From Macrostomum lignano (lineage: Eukaryota): a DNA stretch of 64,000 bases. Numbering within the stretch: the stretch's first letter is position 1; each line of letters starts with the position of its first letter. The notes under the pieces are model-generated. The model did no database searches, was not told the origin of the DNA, and saw only the letters and a list, made by a program, of their open reading frames with translations. Positions 1 through 61,009 of the stretch are shown here, piece by piece. A program made the translations under genes and the position numbers. The stretch spans positions 1 to 64,000 of the forward strand of contig NIVC01004017.1 in assembly GCA_002269645.1 (NCBI GenBank). The letters are read 5' to 3'.

Positions 1-30
1 TCAGAAAACACAAGCAGCCACATCGCTCAC

Positions 31-676
31 CGATATTTGTCTTCTAACCCAGCAGCGCAGAGCAGCACCAGGCCAACTTTGAAGCTGAGCACACGGAGTC
101 TACCGCTTCTCACGTGATCGTAGACGTTGAGCAGCCAATTCAAGCTCAGGTCGATAGTCTGGGCTTGTAGGCCGGCATCAGCACTACTGCCGCTGCTGCC
201 GCCTCGCCACCGCGTGTGCGACATCTGGCAAACAGCCAGCTAGACAGCTGGTCATCTGGGACACGTCAATGAGTCGATCTCCGGCAGCCGCGGTGCCAAT
301 GCCGTGATCTCTGAACACCTCAGCGCGGAGCCTAGCGACACCAGATCCAAGTACAGGGCCCGCGTAGTCTGCGTAGCTTAGCGGCGGTCCGGTAAGCCGC
401 ATACCGGATATAGTTCAGCTCCGTGAGGCTCTGCATCAGCTCGGCCATGATCGGATGATCCCAGCTGGTTTCTCGGGTGTCGGCATTGCGATAATAGGGA
501 AGCTGACTACGTTAGGATGAAGCATTCGTTGCCAAGGAGGTCGGACGCTGTTAGATACGGCTGGATGAGCTGTCTGTTGATGCTGCTGTTGCTGTTGCTG
601 TTGTACAGAATGCACAGAGCCTGTCATGGAAGCGTAGGATGCAGTCATGACATTGGGAACTAAAGACTGTCTTTGC

Positions 677-2669: not shown

Positions 2670-3319
2670 CTTCAGCTGACCGGCCAGCCGCCTCTCTTCC
2701 TCAGTTAATTCGGCCAGCTCATCAGCTGCGGCGGCGCCAGCATCTTCATTCTCTTCATCGTCGGCAACGCCGCTAGAAGACGTCGCCAGTGAATCTTCCC
2801 TTAGCGGCGTCAACGGTAGCGAGACCTCCCAGTGCCGGAGTCGAGCCTCGGACTTATCCAGCCTGCCGATCGCTTCCATGGAGATTGGCGGCTGAGCGGT
2901 GCCGCCGCCGACAACTCGCTCCCGAGACGACTGACGAACCGGCGGAGTTGGCGGCGCGTCGGGCCGGCGATGAGGCGGAGGCTTCGGTGGCAGCTTCGGC
3001 TGCTGCTGCTGCTGACGCTTCCGCTCCGCCAGACGCAGTCGGGCCTGCCTAAGCCGGTCCAGACGCTCCCGCATCGGTTCCGTGTTCTCTTTCGAATGCT
3101 TGACGCACAGCTGGGCACCTGAGTCGATGGCGGCACCCAGCTGGCTGTCCAGATCGTCCAGTCCAGTTGCTGAATCCGGCGACAGGCACTCCAGCAGCGA
3201 CTCCAGGTGCTGGCAGTTCTGCTCCCATTGCCGGAGCTCGATGGCGGTCTCTTCCATGGCAATGCGCCGCTGGTGCAGACCCGACTCCGCCGCCTCCCAG
3301 CTGGACACTACGCTGGAGA
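2670..3319 (-). CDS. DMD: Dystrophin exon (about R20-21 with Pro-rich insert)
   Basis: CCTACAG|TC at 3320 (phase 1); AAG|GTGAGA at 2669; 'SSWEAAESGLHQRRIAMEE'. Confidence 0.9.
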
Positions 3320-6046
3320 CTGTAGGATTGGCAGAGTGATAGGACTGAATCACACTACTGTACTGAGTAGTAGTAGTTTAGAGGGCATGCGCGGCCGGTG
3401 GGTTGTCCTGAGATTTACACCCATGAAGGCCAACCCCCTGACGGCGCAGAGAGTGTACATGCCTGCGTACAGTATTAGCGCGCTTCTATATTGAAGTTAT
3501 TTTCAAGCGCATTCCCGATGCTTAATTTCAAGATTCCGTGAGCCAATTAACAAGTGTAGCTGCATTTGGAACAGAAATTATTAAACAGAATTGGAACTAC
3601 AGAGAGCAGTAGTAGATAAGCTATAGACCAGCAAAACTGGTCAAGTGAATCCAACAACCAAACTCAATTACTTAATTCTCTATCTCCTCCCTAGCTACAG
3701 ACCAACTGCTACACCTCAAGCTCTAGTGAAATATGAGACAGATAGCTCCAGAAGAGAATACCAACCGGATTGCCATTCTGTCCTGGTCCGTGTGTCTTTA
3801 CTCTATTCCCAATGGGGATCGAGAGAGTAATGGAGAGCGCTATAGACCGATCCAGTGAGCGAGGGGCGGGGAGTAGTAAGCTCGCGGAAAGCTCGGCGTC
3901 AGGAGAAAGATGCGACGAGTTGATTAAATTTTATTTCCTGCTTCGCAAAACGAAATCCGCCTCCGCATGCAGCTTCCCACGCATGGCAGTTTCTTATCTA
4001 TGATCTCACTTTTATTATGCTTTCTTATTTTTTGCAAGATACTATAAGGGCGTGTTTTTGTCCAGCGCGACTAAGCTTTCGATACATATCGACGACACTA
4101 GATAATTTTCATAGACAGATAATAAAAGTCTTCTAATGTTTCTTTTGGCAAGCTCAAAATACCCGAATCAAGCAAAGATGCCAAGAATTTACGCGAGGAA
4201 TGAAAAACTCACCAAGGTCAAAAACAATGTCTTAGAAACGTTTATCGCACAACTGGTCGCACAAATTCGCATTTTTTTGTTGAATAATGCGAAACTAAAA
4301 AAAGACCAACAAGCCAATTTTTAGCAGGCGCGAGTTTGGACTACATTTTTTTCTATTTCAATTTTGTTGAAGAGACTTAATTATATTTAAGTTATTCATA
4401 AGGCTTTTTTTACTGAGTTTAAGTCTTGTGCGCAAGCCTTTCCGCCGATCTTGTACCTGGGGTCCGTCTCCTCTCTCTATCTCTCTCTCTCTCTATTTCC
4501 CTGTCTATCTCGCGCCTCACTCATCTCCAACCGCACAAACACCGCGCTTCTCCTGAAGCAGCCAGTAGCGTCGGCATCAGCATCATGCTCTTCCCCAGCC
4601 AGTCCTGTCGCCGTCTTCCCCTTCTCCCTCCCTCTCCCTTTCCTTTCTTCGATGCCTTCCTTTCCATCGCCGAGGATGGGGGTTAAACCAGAGCACCCTC
4701 TCCTCCCATTTTTTTCTAACACCGTCTATGCGCATGAGAAGAAAAACGAGCAAAAAGAGGCTGAGGGGGGATAGGAAAAACCCTTAAGCTCCATCAACCC
4801 CCTGCCACCCCCATCCTTTCGTAGTTTCCACAACGCATCTCTGCTCTGGCGGCAGCGAAGGAAAAGAGAGGAACAGTGAGAGAGATGATAAAACCTAGCC
4901 AGCCAGCTTTATATTTTCCAAATTCTCTCGCTCTGTCTTCTAACTCAAGAGGGGGACTTGAGAAACGAAAAAACACAGCATATAGAAGAGAGGGATGTTA
5001 AAAAAATTGGAATCAGAGAAAGTTGAATCCTTCAGAAGTCCACCCTGAGCCGCCTTAGAGAGCGACTTTTTTCTCTCGCCTTTCAAATGCCATAACATCA
5101 TCTCATCCTGTCAGCTGTGAAGTCAAGACAAAAAAATAAGTCAAGACGGGGACTTTTGACACGGGAAAAAGCTCTTAAGACCTTCTTTGTTACTTTTGGT
5201 CGATCCGATTTGGTTCAACTCCGGTTGTCTGTTTCAATTCTAGAATTCCAGATTTTATAGAGATTTTTTGCGAAATGAAACAAGAGACGCAAGACAGAAA
5301 AGCTAATCAAATTAATAAACAGCAATGACCTGTTATTAAAAGGAAACAGAAACGTGACAGCCGCCAAATACGAAAGGACCCAGGATTTTTTATCATCAAT
5401 GAAATAAGAACGTTGGCATAAGGAAACAATTACAACTGCAGAACAGACTATCCACCGTGTGTGGGCAAGAGGCCCGAGAATGAAGATGAAAAATGGAAAC
5501 AATCACAGGGCACAACAGAGCATGACGGCCTGCTTTAAATACGGAACTACAACTCCGAAAAGGTGTAAAATATGAGGCCTAAAACTCTACAAATAATTTG
5601 ACGAGGGTCAAAGCAGCTGGCCACAACCCCGTCAAGTAAGTTATTAAATATTCATGCAGCAGAGGCGACGCTTGGACCAGCATGCATGCGCCAACCGGGC
5701 CAGATATTTATTTGGGCCCCCGAGGATCATGTCACGAACTTAAAGACGATCTTTAACGCCTTGTGTGCAAGATAGAAGAAATATCCCATACAGACTGCTG
5801 CAAGGATCATATCGGCACTGAGGCAAACTCACCAATATAACTGCGACGTTCCGTGAGGCAAGGAAGCTTTTAAGAGAAAAAAAGTTCTTCCCCTCCCTCT
5901 TTCTCTCTATCTCTGAAGTTGAAGGCCAGTCAAGTGTACGAAATTGCTTTCCACAACGTGAGGCCCATGGAGTCCCGTCTAGAGCCCACTTCCAGTTCAC
6001 TTATTATTAATCACTTCTTGCATACCGCTGGGATTGCACAGCTTAC

Positions 6047-6119: not shown

Positions 6120-6582
6120 CTACGAGTACTATGCAGCAAGCAGAACTCTTGAAAACTTTAAAAAAAAACTTCGGACCGACCCGGGCATAACAAAGACTAA
6201 CATATCGTGATTCGTGACAGAAGACCTTGCTTAACCATCAATTATCAGGGAGCAAAACAAGCAATATTAATTAATATTTTTTACTAATAGAACATAATTT
6301 TTACACCTTTCTCTACGTAATTGGAATTCGTTACAGCAGCAGAATCTCACATCTGATCTAGAACGATCCGACTTAGAAAATGACAGCAGAACTTTTTCCT
6401 CAAAAATATTGACGCATATAAAGCTACTACTAACGAGTAACCAAACTAGAATATTAGTTTTATCCCAAGAGTAATGAAAGATGAAGATCTGATTTTTTTC
6501 TTGCAAAATATGGCTTGACAAAATTCGTAGAACTTAGTCTATCTTGCAAATCATAGTGGCTAAAGACACGCCTTGAACTCAC

Positions 6583-7228
6583 CACGGTTCGCATCATTAA
6601 CAATAGGAAATTCAGCACTTTTTTCTTCATCATCAATAAACGGCCTACGCGAACAAGGCCGACATTCTTCTGAGCAAGATGAGGCCGCAAAAATTGCCGC
6701 GCTAGTGGCGTCAGTAGCCTGACGCATTAACTTCTGCTGACGTAGATGCATTCGTTGTTGGCGCAATTTCTCGTCGGGACTGCACATTCTGCCACTCTGT
6801 CTGGCATTCTGCAAGCTGGGTATCTGGAATGCTGGTGCATGCCTACCAGCCGCCTGTACGTTTGTCTCCGATTCTGATCGGCGGAAACGCTTCCCGGACG
6901 GCGGGTTTTTATCAATACCAACAACGCTTGAAGCAGAAGATTCGTCCCAACGACGAGAAAACCAATCGGCTATGCCGGCAGCTATGTGAGCTGATGAAGC
7001 GCCATTTGTTGCGTTATTCGAGTCAGCGGAACTACAGCTTCTACTTCTACCGATGCTACACTTCGAAGATGAAGACTCCGTAGTAGAGTCATTGGATTGC
7101 TCATTTTGATCGGCGTCAGTTTCTGCATCACCGATGTCGCTTTGATCAGAAAACAAACCTAGCGATATAGTTGAGAATGCCTTAGTGGCTCGATAGACTT
7201 GACTCAAAGTTCGCCAGTAGGCAGTCAT
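6583..7228 (-). CDS. Candidate alternative first coding exon of a short dystrophin isoform (215-aa unique N-terminus)
   Basis: CACACCATGA start at 7228, 215 open codons, then CGT G|GTGAGT (phase 1), matching the phase-1 acceptor at 3320. Confidence 0.6.
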
Positions 7229-7481
7229 GGTGTGCAAGCAAGACCGACAGTATCGATAAGGAGAATACAGGCTCTGCGCGCAGCAAATATGTTATTTTCT
7301 TTGCTTACCTTTCTGATTTATTACCTAGGCCAGCTGAGCCTTGGTCCAATAATAAAGAAGCGAGCTAAGTGTATATCTATGCACAGGAGTTCTGTCAGAC
7401 TTGAAACTCTGTGATTGGACGAATCAAATCGTGCCGACAAACCTCTTTCAGCAGGGTGGCTGTATTCGAATATTATACATG

Positions 7482-7494
7482 CTTTTATACCAAT
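7482..7494 (-). promoter_or_regulatory. TATA box (TATAAAAG) with adjacent CCAAT upstream of candidate exon 6583-7228
   Basis: TATAAAAG at 7489-7482; about 230 nt of ATG-free leader follows to ATG 7228. Confidence 0.4.
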
Positions 7495-7674
7495 TTCTAA
7501 TTAAATACATTATTCGAAGCAATGCAGTTTATTCGTCACATATCTACCAAAAATCGTGACGATTTTCATAACGACTCCAAAAAACGACATGGAGACCTTT
7601 TTATAGCATTTCAAGGTGGTTTCTAAATGAATTTTAAAGCGGCTTTAAAGTGATTCTCGTGAAATTTTCCGGGT

Positions 7675-9590
7675 GATTCCCACAGCGACTTTGGAGAGAT
7701 TCTCATAAAATTTCAGGGTGAATCTCACAGCGACTTTGGAGAGATTCTAATGACATTTCAGGGTGACTCTCACAGCGACTTTGGAGAGATTCTCATGACA
7801 TTTCAGGGTGATTCTCACAGCGACTTTTGAAAGATTCTCATAGCATTTCAGGGTGATTCTCATAGCATTTCAGAGTGATTCTTCTCACAGCGACTTTGGA
7901 GAGATTCTCATGACATTTCAGGGTGATTCTCACAGCGACTTTTGAAAGATTCTCATAGCATTTCAGGGTGATTCTCATAGCATTTCAGAGTGATTCTTCT
8001 CACAGCGACCTTGGAGAGATTCTCATAGCATTTCAGGGTGATTCTCACAGCGACTTTGGAGAGATTTTCATAGCATTTCAGGGTGATTCTCATAGTATTT
8101 CAGGGTGATTCTCATAGCATTTCAGGGTGATTCTTATAGCGACTTTGGAGAGATTCTCGTTAAAATTTCAGGGTGATTCTCACAGCGACCTTGGAGAGAT
8201 TCTCATAGCATTTCAGGGTGATTCTCACAGCGACTTTGGAGAGATTTTCATAGCATTTCAGGGTGATTCTCATAGCATTTCAGGGTGATTCTCATAGCAT
8301 TTCAGGGTGATTCTTATAGCGACTTTGGAGAGATTCTCGTTAAAATTTGAGGGTGATTCTCACAGCGACTTTGGAGAGATTCTCATAGCATTTCAGGGTG
8401 ATTCTCACAGCGACTTTGGAGAGATTCTCATAGCATTTCAGGGTGATTCTCATAGCATTTCAGGGTGATTCTTATAGCGACTTTGGAGAGATTCTCGTTA
8501 AAATTTCAGGGTGATTCTCACAGCGACCTTGGAGAGATTCTCATAGCATTTCAGGGTGATTCTCACAGCGACTTTTGAAAGATTCTCATGATATTTCAGG
8601 GTGATTCTCACAGTGAATTTGGAGTGTTTCTCATTACCTTTCAGGGTGACTCTCACAGCGACTTTGGAGAGATTCTCATAGCATTTCAGGGTGATTCTCA
8701 TAGCATTTCAGGTGATTCTTCTCACAGCGACTTTGGAGAGATTTTCATGACATTTCAGGGTGACTCTCACAGCGACTTTGGAGAGATTTTCATGACATTT
8801 CAGGGTGACTCTCACAGCGACTTTGGAGAGATTCTCATGACATTTCAGGGTGACTCTCACAGCGACTTTGGAGAGATTCTCATAACATTTCAGGGTGACT
8901 CTCACAGCGACTTTGGAGAGATTTTCATGACATTTCAGGGTGACTCTCACAGCGACTTTGGAGAGATTTTCATGACATTTCAGGGTGACTCTCACAGCGA
9001 CTTTGGAGAGATTCTCATAGCATTTCAGGGTGACTCTCACAGCGACTTTGGAGAGATTTTCATGACATTTCAGGGTGACTCTCACAGCGACTTTGGAGAG
9101 ATTTTCATGACATTTCAGGGTGACTCTCACAGCGACTTTGGAGAGATTCTCATAGCATTTCAGAGTGACTCTCACAGCGACTTTGGAGAGATTCTCATGA
9201 CATTTCAGGGTGACTCTCACAGCGACTTTGGAGAGATTCTCATGACATTTCAGGGTGACTCTCACAGCGACTTTGGAGAGATTCTCATAACATTTCAGGG
9301 TGACTCTCACAGCGACTTTGGAGAGATTCTCATAACATTTCAGGGTGACTCTCACAGCGACTTTGGAGAGATTCTCATGACATTTCAGGGTGACTCTCAC
9401 AGCGACTTTGGAGAGATTCTCATAACATTTCAGGGTGACTCTCACAGCGACTTTGGAGAGATTCTCATAGCATTTCAGAGTGATTTTCATAGCGACGTTG
9501 GAGAGATTCTCGTAAAAATTTCTGGGTGATTCTCACAGCGACTTTGGAGAGATTCTCATAGCATTTCAGGGTGATTCTCATAGCGACTTT
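7675..9590. repeat. 45-bp minisatellite
   Basis: Unit CAGGGTGACTCTCACAGCGACTTTGGAGAGATTCTCATGACATTT. Confidence 0.95.
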
Positions 9591-10139: not shown

Positions 10140-10183
10140 ATAGTGTCTGCCTGCCTGTCTGTCTGCCTGTCTGTCTGTCTGCC

Positions 10184-10220
<37 letters not shown>

Positions 10221-10251
10221 GCCTGCCTGTCTGTCTGCCTGTCTGTCTGCC

Positions 10252-10349
<98 letters not shown>

Positions 10350-10411
10350 AGTGTCTGTCTGTCTGTCTTAGTGTCTGTCTGTCTGTCTTAGTGTCTGTCT
10401 GTCTGTCTTAG

Positions 10412-10472
<61 letters not shown>

Positions 10473-10599
10473 GCCTGTCTGTCTGCCTGCCTGTCTAAGT
10501 GTCTGTCTGTCTGTCTTAGTGTCTGCCTGCCTGTCTAAGTGTCTGTCTGTCTGTCTTAGTGTCTGTCTGTCTGTCTAAGTGTCTGTCTGTCTGTCTTAG

Positions 10600-10636
<37 letters not shown>

Positions 10637-10755
10637 GTCTGTCTGCCTGTCTGTCTATCTGTCTGTCTGCCTCTGTCTGTCTGTCTGTCTGTCTGTCTGC
10701 CTAATTAGTATCTGTCTGTCTGTCTGTCTGCCTTCCTGCCTGCCTGTCTGTCTGT
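10140..10755. repeat. (TCTG)n microsatellite
   Basis: Direct inspection. Confidence 0.95.
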
Positions 10756-11282
10756 CCAACTTCTATGTGCTCTTTTAGTTAAAGTACATGTATGCAAGAA
10801 GAAAAAGCACTACAATACAATTCTTAATCGATATTTTAAGTTATATCGTACTTCATATTTGAGATCTGTGTCATAAGCGAGGAAAAAGGTCCTCCTAGCC
10901 AAAATTGTACTTTGTGCAAGAATTCTACACGGGTAAGGAGCCATTGCACTAATTGCGTAAGATATTCCAAATTAGGAATGTTAATTTAACTTGACACCTA
11001 CTCTGTCGATTTCATCCAGAAAGTGTGTGAGAGAGAGCGAAGGAGGTTAACAGCTAATAACTGAGAGCTGAATTTCTTCTTACAGTAGTTTAATTAAAAA
11101 AGTAATAAGTCACAAAGAAATACAGATATTGATATTATTTCTTTGCATTGACCTGATTACGTACACCACATAAATATAAGCGCAAATTTGTAAAGAATGT
11201 GAATTTGATACTTTATTAATAAGAGAAGCTTTTTTAATTAGATTATTCACTGTGCAACTCTCATATCTACAAGTTTTTTAAA

Positions 11283-11644: not shown

Positions 11645-11810
11645 CTTGAGTATTGTAAGGAAAATTCTGTTTCCTCCGCAATAGAGTCTTGACTTCACGC
11701 AGACCGTCTCTGCGAGACTCCAGCTCGTTGATGTAGTTCTTCACTTTCACCAGGGCATCGTTCGGGCTTAAGCTGTCCACGCTGGCTATGGACTGACGGG
11801 ACAGGTCTGA
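11645..11810 (-). CDS. DMD: Dystrophin exon (about R20 helix B)
   Basis: TGTTCCAG|TCA at 11811; CAA G|GTGAGT at 11644; open 55 codons 'VKVKNYINELESRRDGLREV'; phases 0/1 fit neighbours. Confidence 0.85.
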
Positions 11811-23739: not shown

Positions 23740-23931
23740 AGACAGACATGACAGACAGACAGACAGACATGACAGACAGAGAGACACTAAGACAGACAGG
23801 GACAGACAGAGAGACACTAAGACAGACAGGGACAGACAGACAGACAGACAGACAAAGGCAGACAGACAGACAGACAGGCAGACAGACAGACAGACACTAA
23901 GACAGACAGACACTAAGACAGACAGACACTA

Positions 23932-23994
<63 letters not shown>

Positions 23995-24295
23995 GAGACA
24001 CTAAGACAGACAGGGACAGACAGACAGACAGACAGACAGACAGGCAGGTAGGCAGGCAGGCAGGCAGGCAGACAGACAGGCAGGCAGACAGGCAGACAGG
24101 CAGGCAGACAGGCAGGCAGACAGACAGACAGACAGACAGGCAGGCAGACAGGCAGGCAGGCAGACAGACAGACAGACAGACAGACAGACAGGCAGGCAGG
24201 CAGACAGACAGACAGGCAGGCAGACAGGCAGGCAGGCAGACAGACAGACAGACAGACAGGCAGACAGACAGGCAGGCAGACAGACAGACAGGCAC
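23740..24295. repeat. (CAGA/CAGG)n microsatellite
   Basis: Direct inspection; inverted relative to 22865. Confidence 0.92.
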
Positions 24296-24799
24296 TCAAA
24301 CAATCCTCAGAGCAAGCGCAGCAGATATGATAGAAAATTCCCTAACAACAATACCCAGGCCAAACCCTAAAAATCAGAGCTCCCAGAGCACCAGTGAACG
24401 ATAAGTCAGTTGTGTACGCATGGCTAAACTTGAATTAACAAAAATCAACTCAACTAAACAGCACATGAGTTCAACCATTCATCGCTCCAGTTCATTCGAC
24501 TAAAAATAGGTGAGCAGTGAGCAGATGGCAATTTAACAGAAAAATAATCTCTCTTTTAAAGTGGCATCTTTTTCAATAGCATTGATCTACAAAGCTACTC
24601 GAGAAGAAGCTTGCAACGTGCATTATTATAAGCTTTTTGAGCTTGTCAGTTGAAAAAATGAAACTAGCTGCCATTCACTCCGCAATTCAAGATGAGCTAA
24701 GCGGATAGAAGTCTACTTTTCATCGCACACGCCACTTCAAATTTATGTTTTTCAGCATATTAAAAATTTCAACCTCAATTTGAAAAAAATATATTAACA

Positions 24800-37890: not shown

Positions 37891-38253
37891 TGTGTGTTTC
37901 AACTTTTAGTTTCTACGTGTTCCCATGTACATTTCTTTGTTTTTTGCCTTAGAAGCTGTCTGTTTGACATCAGCTCTCGCGGCAAAAAAGCATGCATATG
38001 GCGATCAATCAAAAGAAATTGCAACCCACATATAGCTACATAAAAAGTACAAAGTTCCCTTTTAAATAGAAAAAAAATCACAAAAAGAGGCTGTTGCTTT
38101 TTTACTCTCGGTTCAATATTAGTTAGCAGCGCTAAGGACTTCGGTCTTAAAACAAAAAAATTGTTTGACAGATGACTATTTGATTTATGATATTGAAATT
38201 GCTCATTAATAAATAGCGGCAGTGCAATACGGCACTGATATTTTTGAACAAAC

Positions 38254-38490
38254 CTCCAATTTTTCATCGACGATATCCAATCTCTCAAGGGCTACAGCAG
38301 CAGCTTCTGACACGTCCGCAGGGGTCACCGAGGCGGCGCCACCGACAGTTGACTGGGGCAGCGACGGCTGCTGCTGCTGCTGCTTCGAAGTCGGGCTGCC
38401 GTGCTGAGCAGCAGCACCGATCAGGCTGGCAGCAGCGTCGCGAACTTCGCCAACTCGAGACCGAACTTCGGATAGCTCATGCTGGAGATT
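38254..38490 (-). CDS. DMD: Dystrophin exon (about R15)
   Basis: CCCTCCGCAG|AAT at 38491; GAG|GTTTGT at 38253; '[23 protein letters not shown]' resembles human 'RLKAELNDIRPKVDSTRDQAANL'. Confidence 0.87.
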
Positions 38491-38503
38491 CTGCGGAGGG
38501 GTG

Positions 38504-48345: not shown

Positions 48346-48445
48346 ATTAAGAAAACTTCAAAATTTCATCTCTAGAATGAAAATCACAAAATATTTCCGA
48401 TACTGTGCTTAACAAAGGATCCCAATTAAAAATTCGGGGACTAAC

Positions 48446-48683
48446 CTCGGCAAATTCCTTTGTCCTCTGCACATCCTCCGGCTCAATAGACAGCAAATCC
48501 AGCAAATGCAGCCGATCATTCAGACTCTCCAGCTCGCGCCGAACCCGATCCAATTTTGGCTCGAAGTCCGCCGGCCGCTGAAATCTGTTGAGCAGTTTGG
48601 CCACGTAGTCGAAACTCGCTCGGAGATGGTCACGAACGCCCTCGAGGCGGAGAGCGGCGTCTTTGTTGCCAGATGACATGTGT
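48446..48683 (-). CDS. DMD: Dystrophin exon (about R11-12)
   Basis: ATCCCTCAG|A at 48684 (phase 2); GAG|GTTAGT at 48445; 'RFQRPADFEPKL' resembles human 'LFQKPANFEQRL'. Confidence 0.92.
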
Positions 48684-48719
48684 CTGAGGGATACAAAGGG
48701 ATTAATATTATTATTAGAA

Positions 48720-50945
48720 ATCCCACCCAGTTTAAATTGATGATTTTCCAAAATCTTCCCCAGTTTAAATTGATGTTCATCCAAAATCTCACCCAGTTTA
48801 AATTGATGTTCATCCAAAATCTCACCCAGTTTAAATTGATGATTATCCAAAATCTCACCCAGTTTAAATTGATGTTCATCCAAAATCTCACCCAGTTTAA
48901 ATTGATGTTCATCCAAAATCTCACCCAGTTTAAATTGATGATTATCCAAAATCTTCCCCAGTTTAAATTGATAATTTTCCAAAATCTCACCCAGTTTAAA
49001 TTGATGATTATCCAAAATCTTCCCCAGTTTAAATTGATAATTTTCCAAAATCTCACCCAGTATAAATTGATAATTTTCCAAAATCTCACCCAGTTTAAAT
49101 TGATGTTCATCCAAAATCTCACCCAGTTTAAATTGATGTTCATCCAAAATCTCACCCAGTATAAATTGATGATTATCCAAAATCTCACCCAGTTTAAATT
49201 GATGATTATCCAAAATCTCACCCAGTTTAAATTGATGTTCATCCAAAATCTCACCCAGTTTAAATTGATGATTATCCAAAATCTCACCCAGTTTAAATTG
49301 ATGATTATCTAAAATCTCACCCAGTTTAAATTGATGATTATCTAAAATCTCACCCAGTTTAAATTGATGATTATCTAAAATCTCACCCAGTTTAAATTGA
49401 TGTTCATCCAAAATCTCACCCAGTTTAAATTGATGATTATCCAAAATCTCACCCAGTTTAAATTGATGTTCATCCAAAATCTCACCCAGTTTAAATTGAT
49501 GTTCATCCAAAATCTCACCCAGTTTAAATTGATGATTATCCAAAATCTTCCCCAGTTTAAATTGATAATTTTCCAAAATCTCACCCAGTTTAAATTGATG
49601 ATTATCCAAAATCTTCCCCAGTTTAAATTGATAATTTTCCAAAATCTCACCCAGTATAAATTGATAATTTTCCAAAATCTCACCCAGTTTAAATTGATGT
49701 TCATCCAAAATCTCACCCAGTTTAAATTGATGTTCATCCAAAATCTCACCCAGTATAAATTGATGATTATCCAAAATCTCACCCAGTTTAAATTGATGAT
49801 TATCCAAAATCTCACCCAGTTTAAATTGATGTTCATCCAAAATCTCACCCAGTTTAAATTGATGATTATCCAAAATCTCACCCAGTTTAAATTGATGATT
49901 ATCTAAAATCTCACCCAGTTTAAATTGATGATTATCCAAAATCTCACCCAGTTTAAATTGATGATTATCCAAAATCTCACCCAGTTTAAATTGATGTTCA
50001 TCCAAAATCTCACCCAGTTTAAATTGATGATTATCCAAAATCTCACCCAGTTTAAATTGATGATTATCCAAAATCTCACCCAGTTTAAATTGATAATTAT
50101 CCAAAATCTCACCCAGTTTAAATTGATGATTATCCAAAATCTCACCCAGTTTAAATTGATGTTCATCCAAAATCTCACCCAGTTTAAATTGATAATTTTC
50201 CAAAATCTTCCCCAGTTTAAATTGATGATTATCTAAAATCTCACCCAGTTTAAATTGATGATTATCTAAAATCTCACCCAGTTTAAATTGATGTTCATCC
50301 AAAATCTCACCCAGTTTAAATTGATGTTCATCCAAAATCTCACCCAGTTTAAATTGATGATTATCCAAAATCTCACCCAGTTTAAATTGATGATTATCCA
50401 AAATCTCACCCAGTTTAAATTGATGATTATCCAAAATCTCACCCAGTTTAAATTGATGATTATCTAAAATCTCACCCAGTTTAAATTGATAATTTTCCAA
50501 AATCTTCCCCAGTTTAAATTGATGATTATCTAAAATCTCACCCAGTTTAAATTGATGATTATCTAAAATCTCACCCAGTTTAAATTGATAATTTTCCAAA
50601 ATCTTCCCCAGTTTAAATTGATGATTATCTAAAATCTCACCCAGTTTAAATTGATGATTATCTAAAATCTCACCCAGTTTAAATTGATAATTTTCCAAAA
50701 TCTCACCCAGTTTAACTTGATGATTATCTAAAATCTCACCCAGTTTAAATTGATGATTATCTAAAATCTCACCCAGTTTAAATTGATGATTATCTAAAAT
50801 CTCACCCAGTTTAAATTGATGATTATCCAAAATCTCACCCAGTTTAAATTGATGATTATCCAAAATCTCACCCAGTTTAAATTGATAATTTTCCAAAATC
50901 TCACATTGTTTTAATTGATTATCCGAAATCTCACCCAATTTGAAT
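48720..50945. repeat. 33-bp minisatellite (about 67 units) with 594-bp higher-order duplication
   Basis: Unit CCAAAATCTCACCCAGTTTAAATTGATGATTAT; TATAAA variant at 49061 and 49655. Confidence 0.96.
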
Positions 50946-50989
50946 TGATGATTATCAAAATACCTCAAAACCACAAAATGAGGTCCTAC

Positions 50990-51742: not shown

Positions 51743-51779
51743 TTATAAATACTTGTTAACAAATATATTCTGTCAACTA

Positions 51780-52566
51780 CGATGGGTGTCCCAGAAGTAG
51801 TGTCACTTTTGCTTGCTTCCACAAGTATTAATGTGTGTTAAAAACGTCATATGCCTTAAAAGTTAGCGGCTTATTTTAGCTTTCATGCCACGAAAGTCCC
51901 ATTTTTATAAGTGCTTCCTGCTGTAAGCAGCATGCATTCGTTCGCATACCCTTAGCCATAAAAATACACACCGCGTAGTGCTTCTATGCTCACTTAGAAG
52001 AAAGCCACAAGTACAGCTGATCAAGCACAGAGTTGCAAGACAGCAGTTCGAGGCTGGCCGGCAGTATGTTTTGCCAACTTACCCAACGGTGGTTGGTCTT
52101 TGATATCTACAGCCAGCCTCGAACTGTTCGATCCACCTGTAAACCGTTCGTCGACTGATGGAATCGGGACCGTGAATGCGGGTCAGGTTTTCGTGAATTT
52201 CAGGGCATCTCTGACCAAGACTCTAAAGTGTAAAAATTGCGTGTCTCTGCCCTTCTGTAGAGTGAAAGTTAGGGTCCATGACTGGAACAAGTCTTGCAGC
52301 TGCTGTCTTGCAACTCTGTGCTTGATCAGCTGTACTTGTGGCTTTCTTCTGAGTGAGCATAGAAGCACTATGCGGTGTGTATTTTTATGGCTAAGGGTAT
52401 GCGAACAAATGCATGCTGCTTACAGCAGGAAGCACTTATAAAAATCGGACTTTCGTGGCATGAAAGCTAAAATAAGCCGCTAACTTTTAAGGCATATGGT
52501 TTTTTTAACACGCATTAATACTTGTTGAAGCAAGCAAAAGTGACACTACTTCTGGGACACCCCTCG
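51780..52566. mobile_element. Tc1/mariner-type MITE with about 268-bp terminal inverted repeats
   Basis: Arms 51778-52046 and 52300-52568 are near-perfect reverse complements; termini TA|CGA(T/G)GGGTGTCCC with TA on both sides. Confidence 0.85.
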
Positions 52567-52590
52567 TAAAACAGCGATAAAAAAACTCAC

Positions 52591-57460: not shown

Positions 57461-57548
57461 TCTTAGATGGACTTTTATCGATCTACGGCTAAACCAAGTC
57501 TTTGACTTGGTACACCAAAAATACAACAGCTGCCTGAAACTGACTGAC

Positions 57549-58097
57549 CTTCATCTCTGCCAGCCTCTCTGCAGCCGCCTCGGCCAGCGGCGCCAGCTGA
57601 CCGCCTCTCTGCCCGGCCGCGCTCTGCAGGAAGTCCCGCTGACGGTTCAACGCCAGCCTCAGCTGGGTCAGGCATTCGTAGAATCCTCTGACTCGATCGG
57701 CCACCGCGGCCCGCCGCTGACAGTCCTGCCACACAGCGCTCAGCTCTGTCCAACGCTGCTCAATCTCTTCTAGTAGTTCCTGAATTTCCAAAGCGCTTTC
57801 GGCTGGCACGCGACCCTGCGAAATGCAGGAATCGCCCAGCTGCCTGACAGCAACCAGACGAGGCTCCCAGGTGTTTAATTCGTCGCGAATATCGTCTAGG
57901 AGTAGGCGATGCTGATCGGCTGATAGTTTCTCGGCAGCATCGCCGCTAGCTGCAGCGGATGCTGAGTCCTGCTGAGACTGCTGCTGATGAAGGCTACGCC
58001 GGCTGGCTTCCATTAGGCTGCTACGAGCGCTGTGTGTTAGCGATGTCAATTCTAGCATTGATTCAATGCGATCGAACCAGTCTAGCAGACTGCGAAC
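57549..58097 (-). CDS. DMD: Dystrophin exon (about R4-5)
   Basis: CCAAACAG|GTT at 58098; AAG|GTCAGT at 57548; 'SLLDWFDRIES', 'EEIEQRWTEL'. Confidence 0.9.
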
Positions 58098-58762
58098 CTG
58101 TTTGGTTGAGAAAGACAATATTGCATTGTTATAGGAGCCGGGGTTTGGCCGATAGACTACCTAGCTGTGACAACCATAGCCAGTCACGAGCCCATAGACG
58201 CTAAGGCTGAGATAGCCTTATGTTTCTCGTCAATGGCCTATGGCCACCAGACGAAATCAAACTACAGGATTGGCGTTCCATAGTTAACTGCAAAGAATTG
58301 CGGAGTCAGGCGTGGATGTCATCACCCAGTTGCCTGCGCTACCTGTCCCGCAAATTGAGCATAATCTGATTGAGCACTCATGCGTCGCAAAATACCCAAA
58401 TTAAAGCCTGAAATCATGCAACTGCTCTCCTCATACATGGTTTCGGCCATAGACAATCGTCGAAGCATGGGTTGAATAAGATTGGCCGTGTCTTCAATTG
58501 AATGCCCTTAAAGCTTCGATAGTTTACCATAGACAGTTTTGTCAGAGCTACACTTTGAGAGTGAGGAGAGTTGGTTTTAGGGCTCCCCAGTGCGAGTACC
58601 ATAGACTATTTCATGCTTTCTAACAAATCAATGAATTTATTGGATAGCCAGGCTAAAAAGCACCGTACAGTTACCATACAAAATCTTGAAGCCATTGATA
58701 TCAACTTCGATAACAGTGCTTGAAGATTATCACCAAAAAACATATATTCTTTTCCAACCAAC

Positions 58763-59789: not shown

Positions 59790-60002
59790 TGGTTCGACTG
59801 TCTCTTTAATATAATATAACTACAACTAAAGAAACAAGATCAAAACTGAGAACATTTAGCTAGTACATAAATTGTCCACTATGCCGACTATGCTATCGAT
59901 GGAGAATTTCCTGCTTTAAAATTGCATCCTTTTTGGCAGAATATCAGACAATAGAAATTAAAATAATCCTAATTCCTTTACTACAAAAACATGACAACTC
60001 AC

Positions 60003-60821
60003 CACATCTCTAAGCAAGCTTTCATCCTCTTCAAATTGTCTCCAAGCCAGCAAGGCCGATTGCAGATCTGAGAATCGCTCAGAATTATAAGCCATGGTGT
60101 CTGTCCATCTAGCAGCTAGGCCTTCGATTCGGGTTTCCGTTCCACTCTCGCCATTAGCATCGGCGTCCAATACCAGAGCGTCCTGCACTGACGCTACCAG
60201 AGCTTCCTGTATCTCCAAGTAGTCTTGAAACTCGCGATGCGATCTTAACTGCCGCTTGATGTCTTCTACAAATGGACCGACGCCGCCCACCGTCTCCTGC
60301 TCGATGCGGCCCTCAGCCCAGTGCAGAAATCCGCTCAGCCGTCGAATATCTCGCTCTTGAAGCGCGGCCAGACGCTTTCTTAGTCGAGCCTCTTTAGCAA
60401 CAGCGGCTTGTCTGAGCGCGTCCCATCGGGTCTGAAGCAGCTGCACCTGCGACTGAATCTCTTTCCTAGCCGGACCGCTCAGCTCTCCGGAGGTGAGCAG
60501 TGCATCAGCCAGTTCCAAGACGCACCTGACGTCCTCCTGATTCTCAGTCAGCTGATCGGCAATTGCTTCGTGATCGCGATACTGCCGGCGAGCTTCGCGA
60601 ACTGTGCTCAACTCGGATTCGGACACGGGCTCCGCTACCTTATCAGCGGGCTGCTGCCGATTCGAGTTTAGTTCGTCATTGTCAACAACGTCGTCGTTGT
60701 CGTCGTCTTGCTCGTCGGCAGCCGAGGCGACAAGATCTTCGGCGTCGAATAGCCATTCGAGGCAACGCTCCAGCGAGTGTTGATAGTCGCGCAATAGTGG
60801 CAATTGTTGCTGTTGCTGTTG
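60003..60821 (-). CDS. DMD: Dystrophin exon (spectrin repeats R1-R2, start of R3)
   Basis: T-tract ...TATAAACAG|CAA at 60822; GTG|GTGAGT at 60002; 'LQTRWDALRQAAVAKEARL', 'VGPFVEDIKRQLRSHREFQDYLE' match human R1/R2. Confidence 0.94.
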
Positions 60822-61009
60822 CTGTTTATAAAAAAGAAAAAAAGACATATTAGTATGCGTGAATATGTATTAAGCAGACGAATATTGAAAATCAAAGACT
60901 ACAGATAAGAAGACAGAGATGATACAGAAGAGATTAAGCTACCCTGCTGCTGAGTACACCAAAGTGTATTGAAAGACCTGTGGGACAGCAAATCCTACGA
61001 AAATATTTT

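Follow-up and report, generated by a model that had tools for sequence, protein, structure and literature searches.

A candidate alternative first exon for a short dystrophin in an intron of the Macrostomum lignano dystrophin gene

Short dystrophins made from internal promoters carry nervous-system and non-muscle roles in vertebrates and flies. Such isoforms arise from intronic promoters in vertebrates, sea urchin and Drosophila, and those of the fly have unique N-terminal domains (PMC1790709, PMC2840664); the precedent in vertebrates and Drosophila that was invoked in an earlier, sequence-only reading of the DNA studied here is upheld by these reports. Jin et al. describe the orthologue of human intron 55 as host of the first exons of Dp116, G-utrophin, sea urchin SuDp98 and Drosophila Dp205, and argue that this promoter is ancient (PMC1790709). 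How often the short-dystrophin arrangement arose is an open question in evolution (PMC1790709). A narrow literature search found no paper on dystrophin isoforms of flatworms.

We analysed 64,000 nt of DNA from the flatworm Macrostomum lignano (positions 1 to 64,000 of contig NIVC01004017.1; this whole stretch is called the window below). Tentatively, and with somewhat less than even confidence, we interpret a minus-strand segment of the window as an alternative first exon of a short M. lignano dystrophin, preferably under a promoter of its own. The segment would serve as an alternative 5' exon, located in the 8.3-kb intron that separates exon 11810-11645 from exon 3319-2670. Transcription would start 5' of the ATG at 7228, probably at an intronic promoter; behind an ATG-free leader, the transcript would encode a 215-residue, Ser/Ala/Arg-rich and mostly disordered N-terminus, with splicing from 6583 to 3319; we infer the use of this junction, the transcription start site and any function. 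The product would lack an actin-binding domain and the larger part of the rod, and would retain about four spectrin repeats together with WW, EF-hand and ZZ. Exon 3319 starts ~570 residues ahead of the WW, and ~150 of these are low-complexity (proline-rich, acidic or polyglutamine inserts), so that roughly four spectrin repeat lengths remain; the earlier estimate of a start 'in about R20' is fair on this count. The proposed arrangement comprises the following features.

7590..9590, no strand: 45-bp minisatellite, ~42 copies, immediately upstream of the putative promoter
7489..7482, minus strand: candidate TATA box TATAAAAG, read directly from the sequence
7460..7229, minus strand: putative 5' untranslated leader, ATG-free; the nearest upstream ATG is at 7480
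7228..6583, minus strand: coding portion of the candidate first exon: start codon ATG, 215 codons and a single last base, which ends it in phase 1
6583 (last exon base G) and 6582-6577 (GTGAGT), minus strand: candidate donor GTG/GTGAGT, 12.7 bits, phase 1
6562..6560, minus strand: read-through stop codon of the unspliced frame, 222 aa counted from the ATG
11810..11645, minus strand: upstream constitutive exon, donor AAG/GTGAGT, phase 1
3319..2670, minus strand: downstream constitutive exon and proposed partner, phase 1 acceptor CTACAG/TC

The predicted product is similar to vertebrate Dp140 both in size class and in the length of rod retained, about R19/R20 to R24; the first exon of Dp140 is non-coding, and translation starts far downstream. 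Where vertebrate first exons are unique, they encode far fewer residues than 215, and the length of the unique head next to them counts against our interpretation. The Dp140 promoter is a tetrapod innovation (PMC1790709), and a common origin of Dp140 and the candidate is excluded. By analogy of design, the closest counterpart of the predicted isoform is Drosophila Dp186. Like the candidate, Dp186, Dp205 and Dp117 of Drosophila have an intronic first exon with a sizeable unique N-terminal domain joined to the distal rod, and Dp186 retains four spectrin repeats plus WW, EF and ZZ (PMC2840664), compared with about four repeats in the predicted flatworm product. However, the fly isoforms have no sequence similarity to the candidate, and they are proven by cDNA, mutants and conservation within Drosophila, whereas the flatworm isoform is predicted from sequence. 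Dp205, moreover, comes from the orthologue of human intron 55 (PMC1790709), and the flatworm candidate lies elsewhere. Vertebrate Dp116 and G-utrophin and sea urchin SuDp98 share with the candidate the N-terminal truncation, the start in the distal rod and the internal first exon, but they keep about two repeats and originate in the orthologue of human intron 55 (PMC1790709), whose likely flatworm counterpart is one intron further downstream than the candidate.

This difference in position can be followed in the flatworm gene itself. By extrapolation of a collinear alignment, the first residue of exon 2290 falls at residues 2733-2735 of mouse dystrophin (9c3c_D), which, with a mouse/human offset of 7 residues at the WW, corresponds to about human 2740-2742. 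The first codon of human exon 56 is 2740 (c.8218), and the exon starts in phase 0. Phase 0 also applies to flatworm intron 2669-2291 (379 nt), and because of the mapping of exon 2290 and the shared phase it is likely to be the counterpart of human intron 55. Human dystrophin intron 52 is of phase 1; no collinear alignment of exon 3319 with mammalian dystrophin was obtained that would bear on orthology to that intron. The candidate is one intron upstream of this likely counterpart, a position that fits an independent origin. Its earlier description as 'independently evolved' agrees with a place outside the likely counterpart of human intron 55 (PMC1790709).

From its sequence, the gene spanning the window on the minus strand is the M. 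lignano dystrophin, as had been claimed, because it combines spectrin repeats, a WW region that aligns with human dystrophin, a dystrophin-type EF-hand and a near-identical M. lignano protein with a ZZ domain. Pfam Spectrin was matched at 59961-60869(-) (E=3.7e-13) and at 57492-58160(-) (E=1.6e-05), and the mouse dystrophin rod gave weak matches that were collinear with the flatworm gene. After one-base frameshifts had been repaired by hand, the region from the WW through the start of the EF region aligned with human dystrophin 1EG3 (E=4e-21) and was also collinear with mouse dystrophin 9c3c_D. Pfam EF-hand_2, the dystrophin-type EF-hand, was found at 30-239(-) (E=6.8e-11). The exon from 1310 downwards was 98% identical to UniRef entry A0A1I8FBI6, a ZZ-type domain protein of M. 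lignano with the domains EF-hand_2, EF-hand_3 and ZZ; the ZZ domain of the gene lies beyond the edge of the window and is present in this protein, to which the 98% identity applies over the common exon. More than 20 dystrophin exons were found in the window, and the introns between them are full of minisatellites.

Several observations on the locus were made alongside. In the WW/early EF-hand exon (window 300-520(-)), at least two single-base frame repairs were needed to read ...KLRRLQRALYLDL, and A0A1I8FBI6, which derives from another assembly, has different frame errors within the matching stretch; these errors are probably assembly indels and not signs of a decaying gene copy. Intron 2008/1310(-) is a second phase-1 intron and splits a Gly codon at ...QQQLLLG/GDAESV, a junction that aligns with ...APVGGDFPAV of mouse dystrophin near residue 2826. 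We know of no human intron near this residue, and intron positions are therefore only partly common with vertebrates. By eye, a GC-rich segment at 38250-38500(-) reads like spectrin; otherwise only its antisense shadow on the plus strand had been picked up, and it is probably one more dystrophin exon, missed by the 90-codon filter. The output of a whole-window repeat scan was dominated by a 33-bp minisatellite and contributed nothing on the candidate exon. At 48350-50989, a 33-bp minisatellite of ~67 copies is open in one minus-strand frame for 880 codons and continues straight into a genuine spectrin exon, whose true acceptor is likely at 48683. A (TGTC)n microsatellite of ~150 units (10144-10756) has an inverted copy 13 kb away at 23856-24302, with arms of up to 447 nt that are 72-83% complementary. 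An inverted repeat in an intron (51778-52046 and 52300-52568; 269 nt, 96% complementary, 253-nt spacer) looks like a foldback or miniature-transposon structure.

The start codon of the candidate (ATG, 7228-7226) lies inside CACACCATGA in the context ACCATGA, with an A at -3, and the 215 open codons said to follow it were confirmed. From stop to stop the frame comprises 243 codons (7291-6563) and sits, on the same strand as the gene, within dystrophin intron 11644-3320. Depending on the assumed composition, ~0.002-0.03 frames as long as 243 codons would be expected by chance in one window. The intron control set for frame length still contained tandem repeats, in which frames reached 598 codons, and length is therefore informative for non-repeat sequence only.

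A codon model trained on 21 confident exons of the dystrophin gene scored the candidate at +0.207 bits per codon in frame 0 and gave negative values for all five other frames. This score exceeded those of 759 out of 759 intron windows (maximum 0.163) but was lower than that of every real exon (0.30-1.02), which counts against a real exon. Codon-position periodicity (chi-square 34.7) was within the range of real exons and stronger than in any of 74 non-repeat intron windows (highest value 27.6) or of 2000 simulated chance frames (highest value 31.7). Against a real exon speaks that the periodicity was strong in the first half only (chi-square 40.4, versus 10.1 in the second). The candidate was the sole frame of the 8.3-kb intron with a clearly positive total score and, across the window, the only non-repeat frame of 90 codons or more not belonging to a known exon that joined a positive score to strong periodicity.

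Third-position GC of the candidate (0.41) equalled that of the flanking intron, compared with 0.57-0.72 in the three nearest exons, so that synonymous usage looks unselected; the synonymous choices lean towards A/T, and codon usage is unlike that of the dystrophin exons. We take the frame to be truly coding, with selection that is weak or recent. The third-position GC, still intron-like, would also fit an origin of the exon from intronic sequence. A more far-reaching proposal, which we consider doubtful, is that a flatworm-specific coding exon arose in this way and gave a Dp186-like dystrophin from an intron without a known dystrophin promoter elsewhere in animals.

The candidate sequence is unique in the window, and tandem, flanking direct and inverted repeats are all absent. 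A mobile element or retrocopy was rejected, as there were no flanking direct or inverted repeats, no second copy in the window and no domain match. We also rejected a decayed triplet repeat as the source of the periodicity, since serine is encoded by all six codons (24 TCN and 12 AGY) and Tandem Repeats Finder reported nothing in the candidate. The assembly carries single-base indels in real exons, and the ends of the candidate frame could thus be slightly off. M. lignano is a hidden tetraploid (PMC5704211), and genomes exist for its relatives M. cliftonense and M. hystrix (PMC10468722).

The 215-residue head contains 36 Ser, 26 Ala, 20 Arg and 15 Asp, and its 27 basic and 27 acidic residues give a net charge of zero. 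Of the earlier characterization as 'Ser/Asp-rich non-spectrin' sequence, the second part stands, since a Pfam scan of the peptide found no significant domain and no spectrin, and the first part needs correction to Ser/Ala/Arg-rich (Asp 15/215). AlphaFold2 was given the head followed by the opening 107 residues of exon 3319, with no alignment. It gave pLDDT values <50 over most of the head, with one confident helix (151-183) and a low-confidence N-terminal helix, and predicted confident spectrin-like helices from residue 213 on, that is, exactly at the exon junction. The first 27 residues (MTAYWRTLSQVYRATKAFSTISLGLFS, 7148-7228(-)), for which that low-confidence helix is predicted, include three basic and zero acidic residues, and this predicted N-terminus resembles a targeting presequence.

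Neither a word-indexed search of the 215-aa peptide against 5.8 billion proteins nor a full HMMER search against 1.84 billion cluster representatives returned a significant match. The genuine neighbouring exons 13636, 11810 and 3319, used as control queries, also gave nothing in the same databases; these databases therefore lack the relevant genomes, and missing homologues of the head carry no weight. An exact look-up of the unspliced frame product from three starts, and of A0A1I8FBI6, found none on record.

Splice matrices were built from 18 donors and 14 acceptors of the dystrophin gene, and each real donor was scored with its own sequence left out. Donor 6583 (12.7 bits) falls in the upper half of the real donors (4.2-15.3), a score that only 9 of 3165 minus-strand GTs reach, and the real donor at 60003 has the same nine bases, GTGGTGAGT. 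M. lignano is reported to use GT[G/A]AG at donors and CAG at acceptors (PMC8629364), and donor 6583 agrees with the former. It is positioned 7 codons ahead of the closure of the frame at 6560. Its phase is 1, as exon 3319 needs, which bears out the earlier statement that G/GTGAGT is in phase for that exon; the one base left by donor 6583 or 11645 and the two from exon 3319 (G+TC) form a Val codon either way. All three possible joins (11645 to 3319; 6583 to 3319; 11645 to 7158...6583 to 3319) are free of stops. Acceptor 3319, itself part of the training set of the matrix, has the highest score downstream of 6583 (16.9 bits). Seven AGs of at least 3 bits lie between the two sites, the best at 5114 with 8.7 bits, and all of them run into a stop within 5-47 codons; only acceptor 3319 keeps the frame open (225 codons).

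On the upstream side, the acceptor-like sites at and within the frame are these.

7273, minus strand: acceptor, -3.3 bits; 15% of the AGs of the strand do as well
7158, minus strand: acceptor CTAG/GT, -9.7 bits; 40% of the AGs of the strand do as well
6669, minus strand: acceptor, 0.6 bits; bottom of the real range (0.5-14)

A usable acceptor before the candidate frame is absent, 7158 and 7273 being no better than background AGs, and a strong donor without an acceptor to match is what one sees in first exons. Scored as a phase 1 donor, CTAG/GTTTGT at 7159(-) reaches 7.0 bits; with this donor, a shorter alternative first exon (7228-7159, 23 codons and one base) could join 3319 in frame.

The 5' end is the least secure part of the proposal. 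Upstream of the start codon, the motif TATAAAAG was found on the minus strand where the sequence-only reading had placed it. It occurs four times on this strand, and TATAAA 45 times; the motif is common in the AT-rich intron and weak alone. The ATG at 7480 is the only one between the TATA motif and the start codon, which leaves 252 nt free of ATG, slightly more than the ~230 nt claimed before, and only 2.4% of intronic ATG-to-ATG gaps reach this length. A transcription start ~30 nt past the TATA motif would map near 7461-7455, where no clear initiator motif was found. A transcript of the candidate exon would probably start at an intronic promoter upstream of 7228, with the TATA motif at 7489 as the sole candidate element. 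The output of a bacterial-type promoter scan was disregarded as irrelevant to a eukaryote. RAMPAGE data exist for M. lignano (PMC5730564).

Among other explanations, a separate same-strand gene nested in the dystrophin intron holds up best, and we consider it unlikely. Such a gene would consist either of a single exon of 222 aa that ends at the stop at 6560 or of two exons, with splicing from 6583 to, for example, 5114, where the protein would end 5 codons on. The frame's own ATG, its ATG-free leader, the TATA motif and a codon usage unlike that of dystrophin exons would all suit a nested gene, as would the targeting-peptide-like first 27 residues, basic and free of acidic residues, the score of acceptor 5114 (8.7 bits) and AATAAA signals at 5712, 4016 and 3935. 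In the single-exon version, however, a near-consensus donor in the last 7 codons, in a phase that fits exon 3319, must be a coincidence, with a chance of ~0.002, given that 12 GTGAGT lie outside exons on this strand of the 64 kb. A single-exon gene would also have no poly(A) signal within 850 nt past its stop, the first AATAAA/ATTAAA being that at 5712, and the intron contains no further coding-like segment.

It is distinctly less probable that the open frame is non-functional, whether it arose by chance, is a dead exon or is left over from inserted coding sequence. The intron-like third-position GC, a codon score under that of every real exon and the prediction of a mostly disordered peptide point in this direction, as does the failure to find homologues anywhere, for which the exon controls show the databases to be uninformative. 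By contrast, the length, the periodicity, the strong in-phase donor at the end, the ATG-free leader and the good start context are jointly very unlikely by chance. The frame is intact although the assembly shows indels in real exons, and signatures of repeats or insertion are absent.

We hold it to be very unlikely that the short dystrophin mRNA receives a trans-spliced leader at an acceptor within the putative leader (e.g. 7407/7406), with no internal promoter. Trans-splicing affects some 30% of the genes of M. lignano, with a spliced leader whose last three bases are ATG (PMC8629364, PMC5730564). Site 7406, which resembles an acceptor, scores 6.9 bits with the cis-splice matrix and has no in-frame use from exon 11645, and site 7273 is in frame with the open frame. 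The reported motif [T/C]TNCAG (PMC8629364) is nevertheless poorly matched, in part by 7406 and hardly by 7273, and if the ATG of the leader were spliced to 7406, a short upstream frame of ~27 codons would result. The ATG-free stretch of 252 nt also begins far upstream of either site, in keeping with a longer, retained leader. At the weak acceptor GCGCGCAG/AGC at 7273(-), the ATG of the spliced leader would give an in-frame start 15 codons upstream of 7228. In the boldest variant of the proposal of a flatworm-specific exon, the 5' end may be formed by spliced-leader trans-splicing within the dystrophin pre-mRNA, with no promoter.

The least probable explanation is an alternatively included internal exon of full-length dystrophin, either a phase 1-1 cassette from 7158 or an 87-nt cassette from 6669, both ending at 6583: both would be in frame between exons 11645 and 3319, and acceptor 6669 is at the lowest edge of the real range, but the ATG-free leader would then serve no purpose, the 6669 version would leave unexplained the strongest coding periodicity, which lies upstream of that site, and the acceptor of the 7158 version scores like a random AG and is a TAG, whereas 12 of the 14 reference acceptors are CAG, with the frame open for 44 codons further upstream. 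Of the earlier suggestion of a cassette starting at codon 22, the CTAG/GT and the open translation are thus real, and the acceptor is not convincing.

We regard the alternative first exon as a plausible annotation hypothesis, a predicted instance of a known isoform type. Transgenesis and RNA interference work in M. lignano, and the unique exon would permit isoform-specific knock-down in this animal. If confirmed at a non-orthologous intron, the exon would argue for repeated, convergent invention of short dystrophins; and if the more far-reaching proposal of a flatworm-specific exon is true, the 'unique head plus distal rod' design would have arisen independently for the third time.
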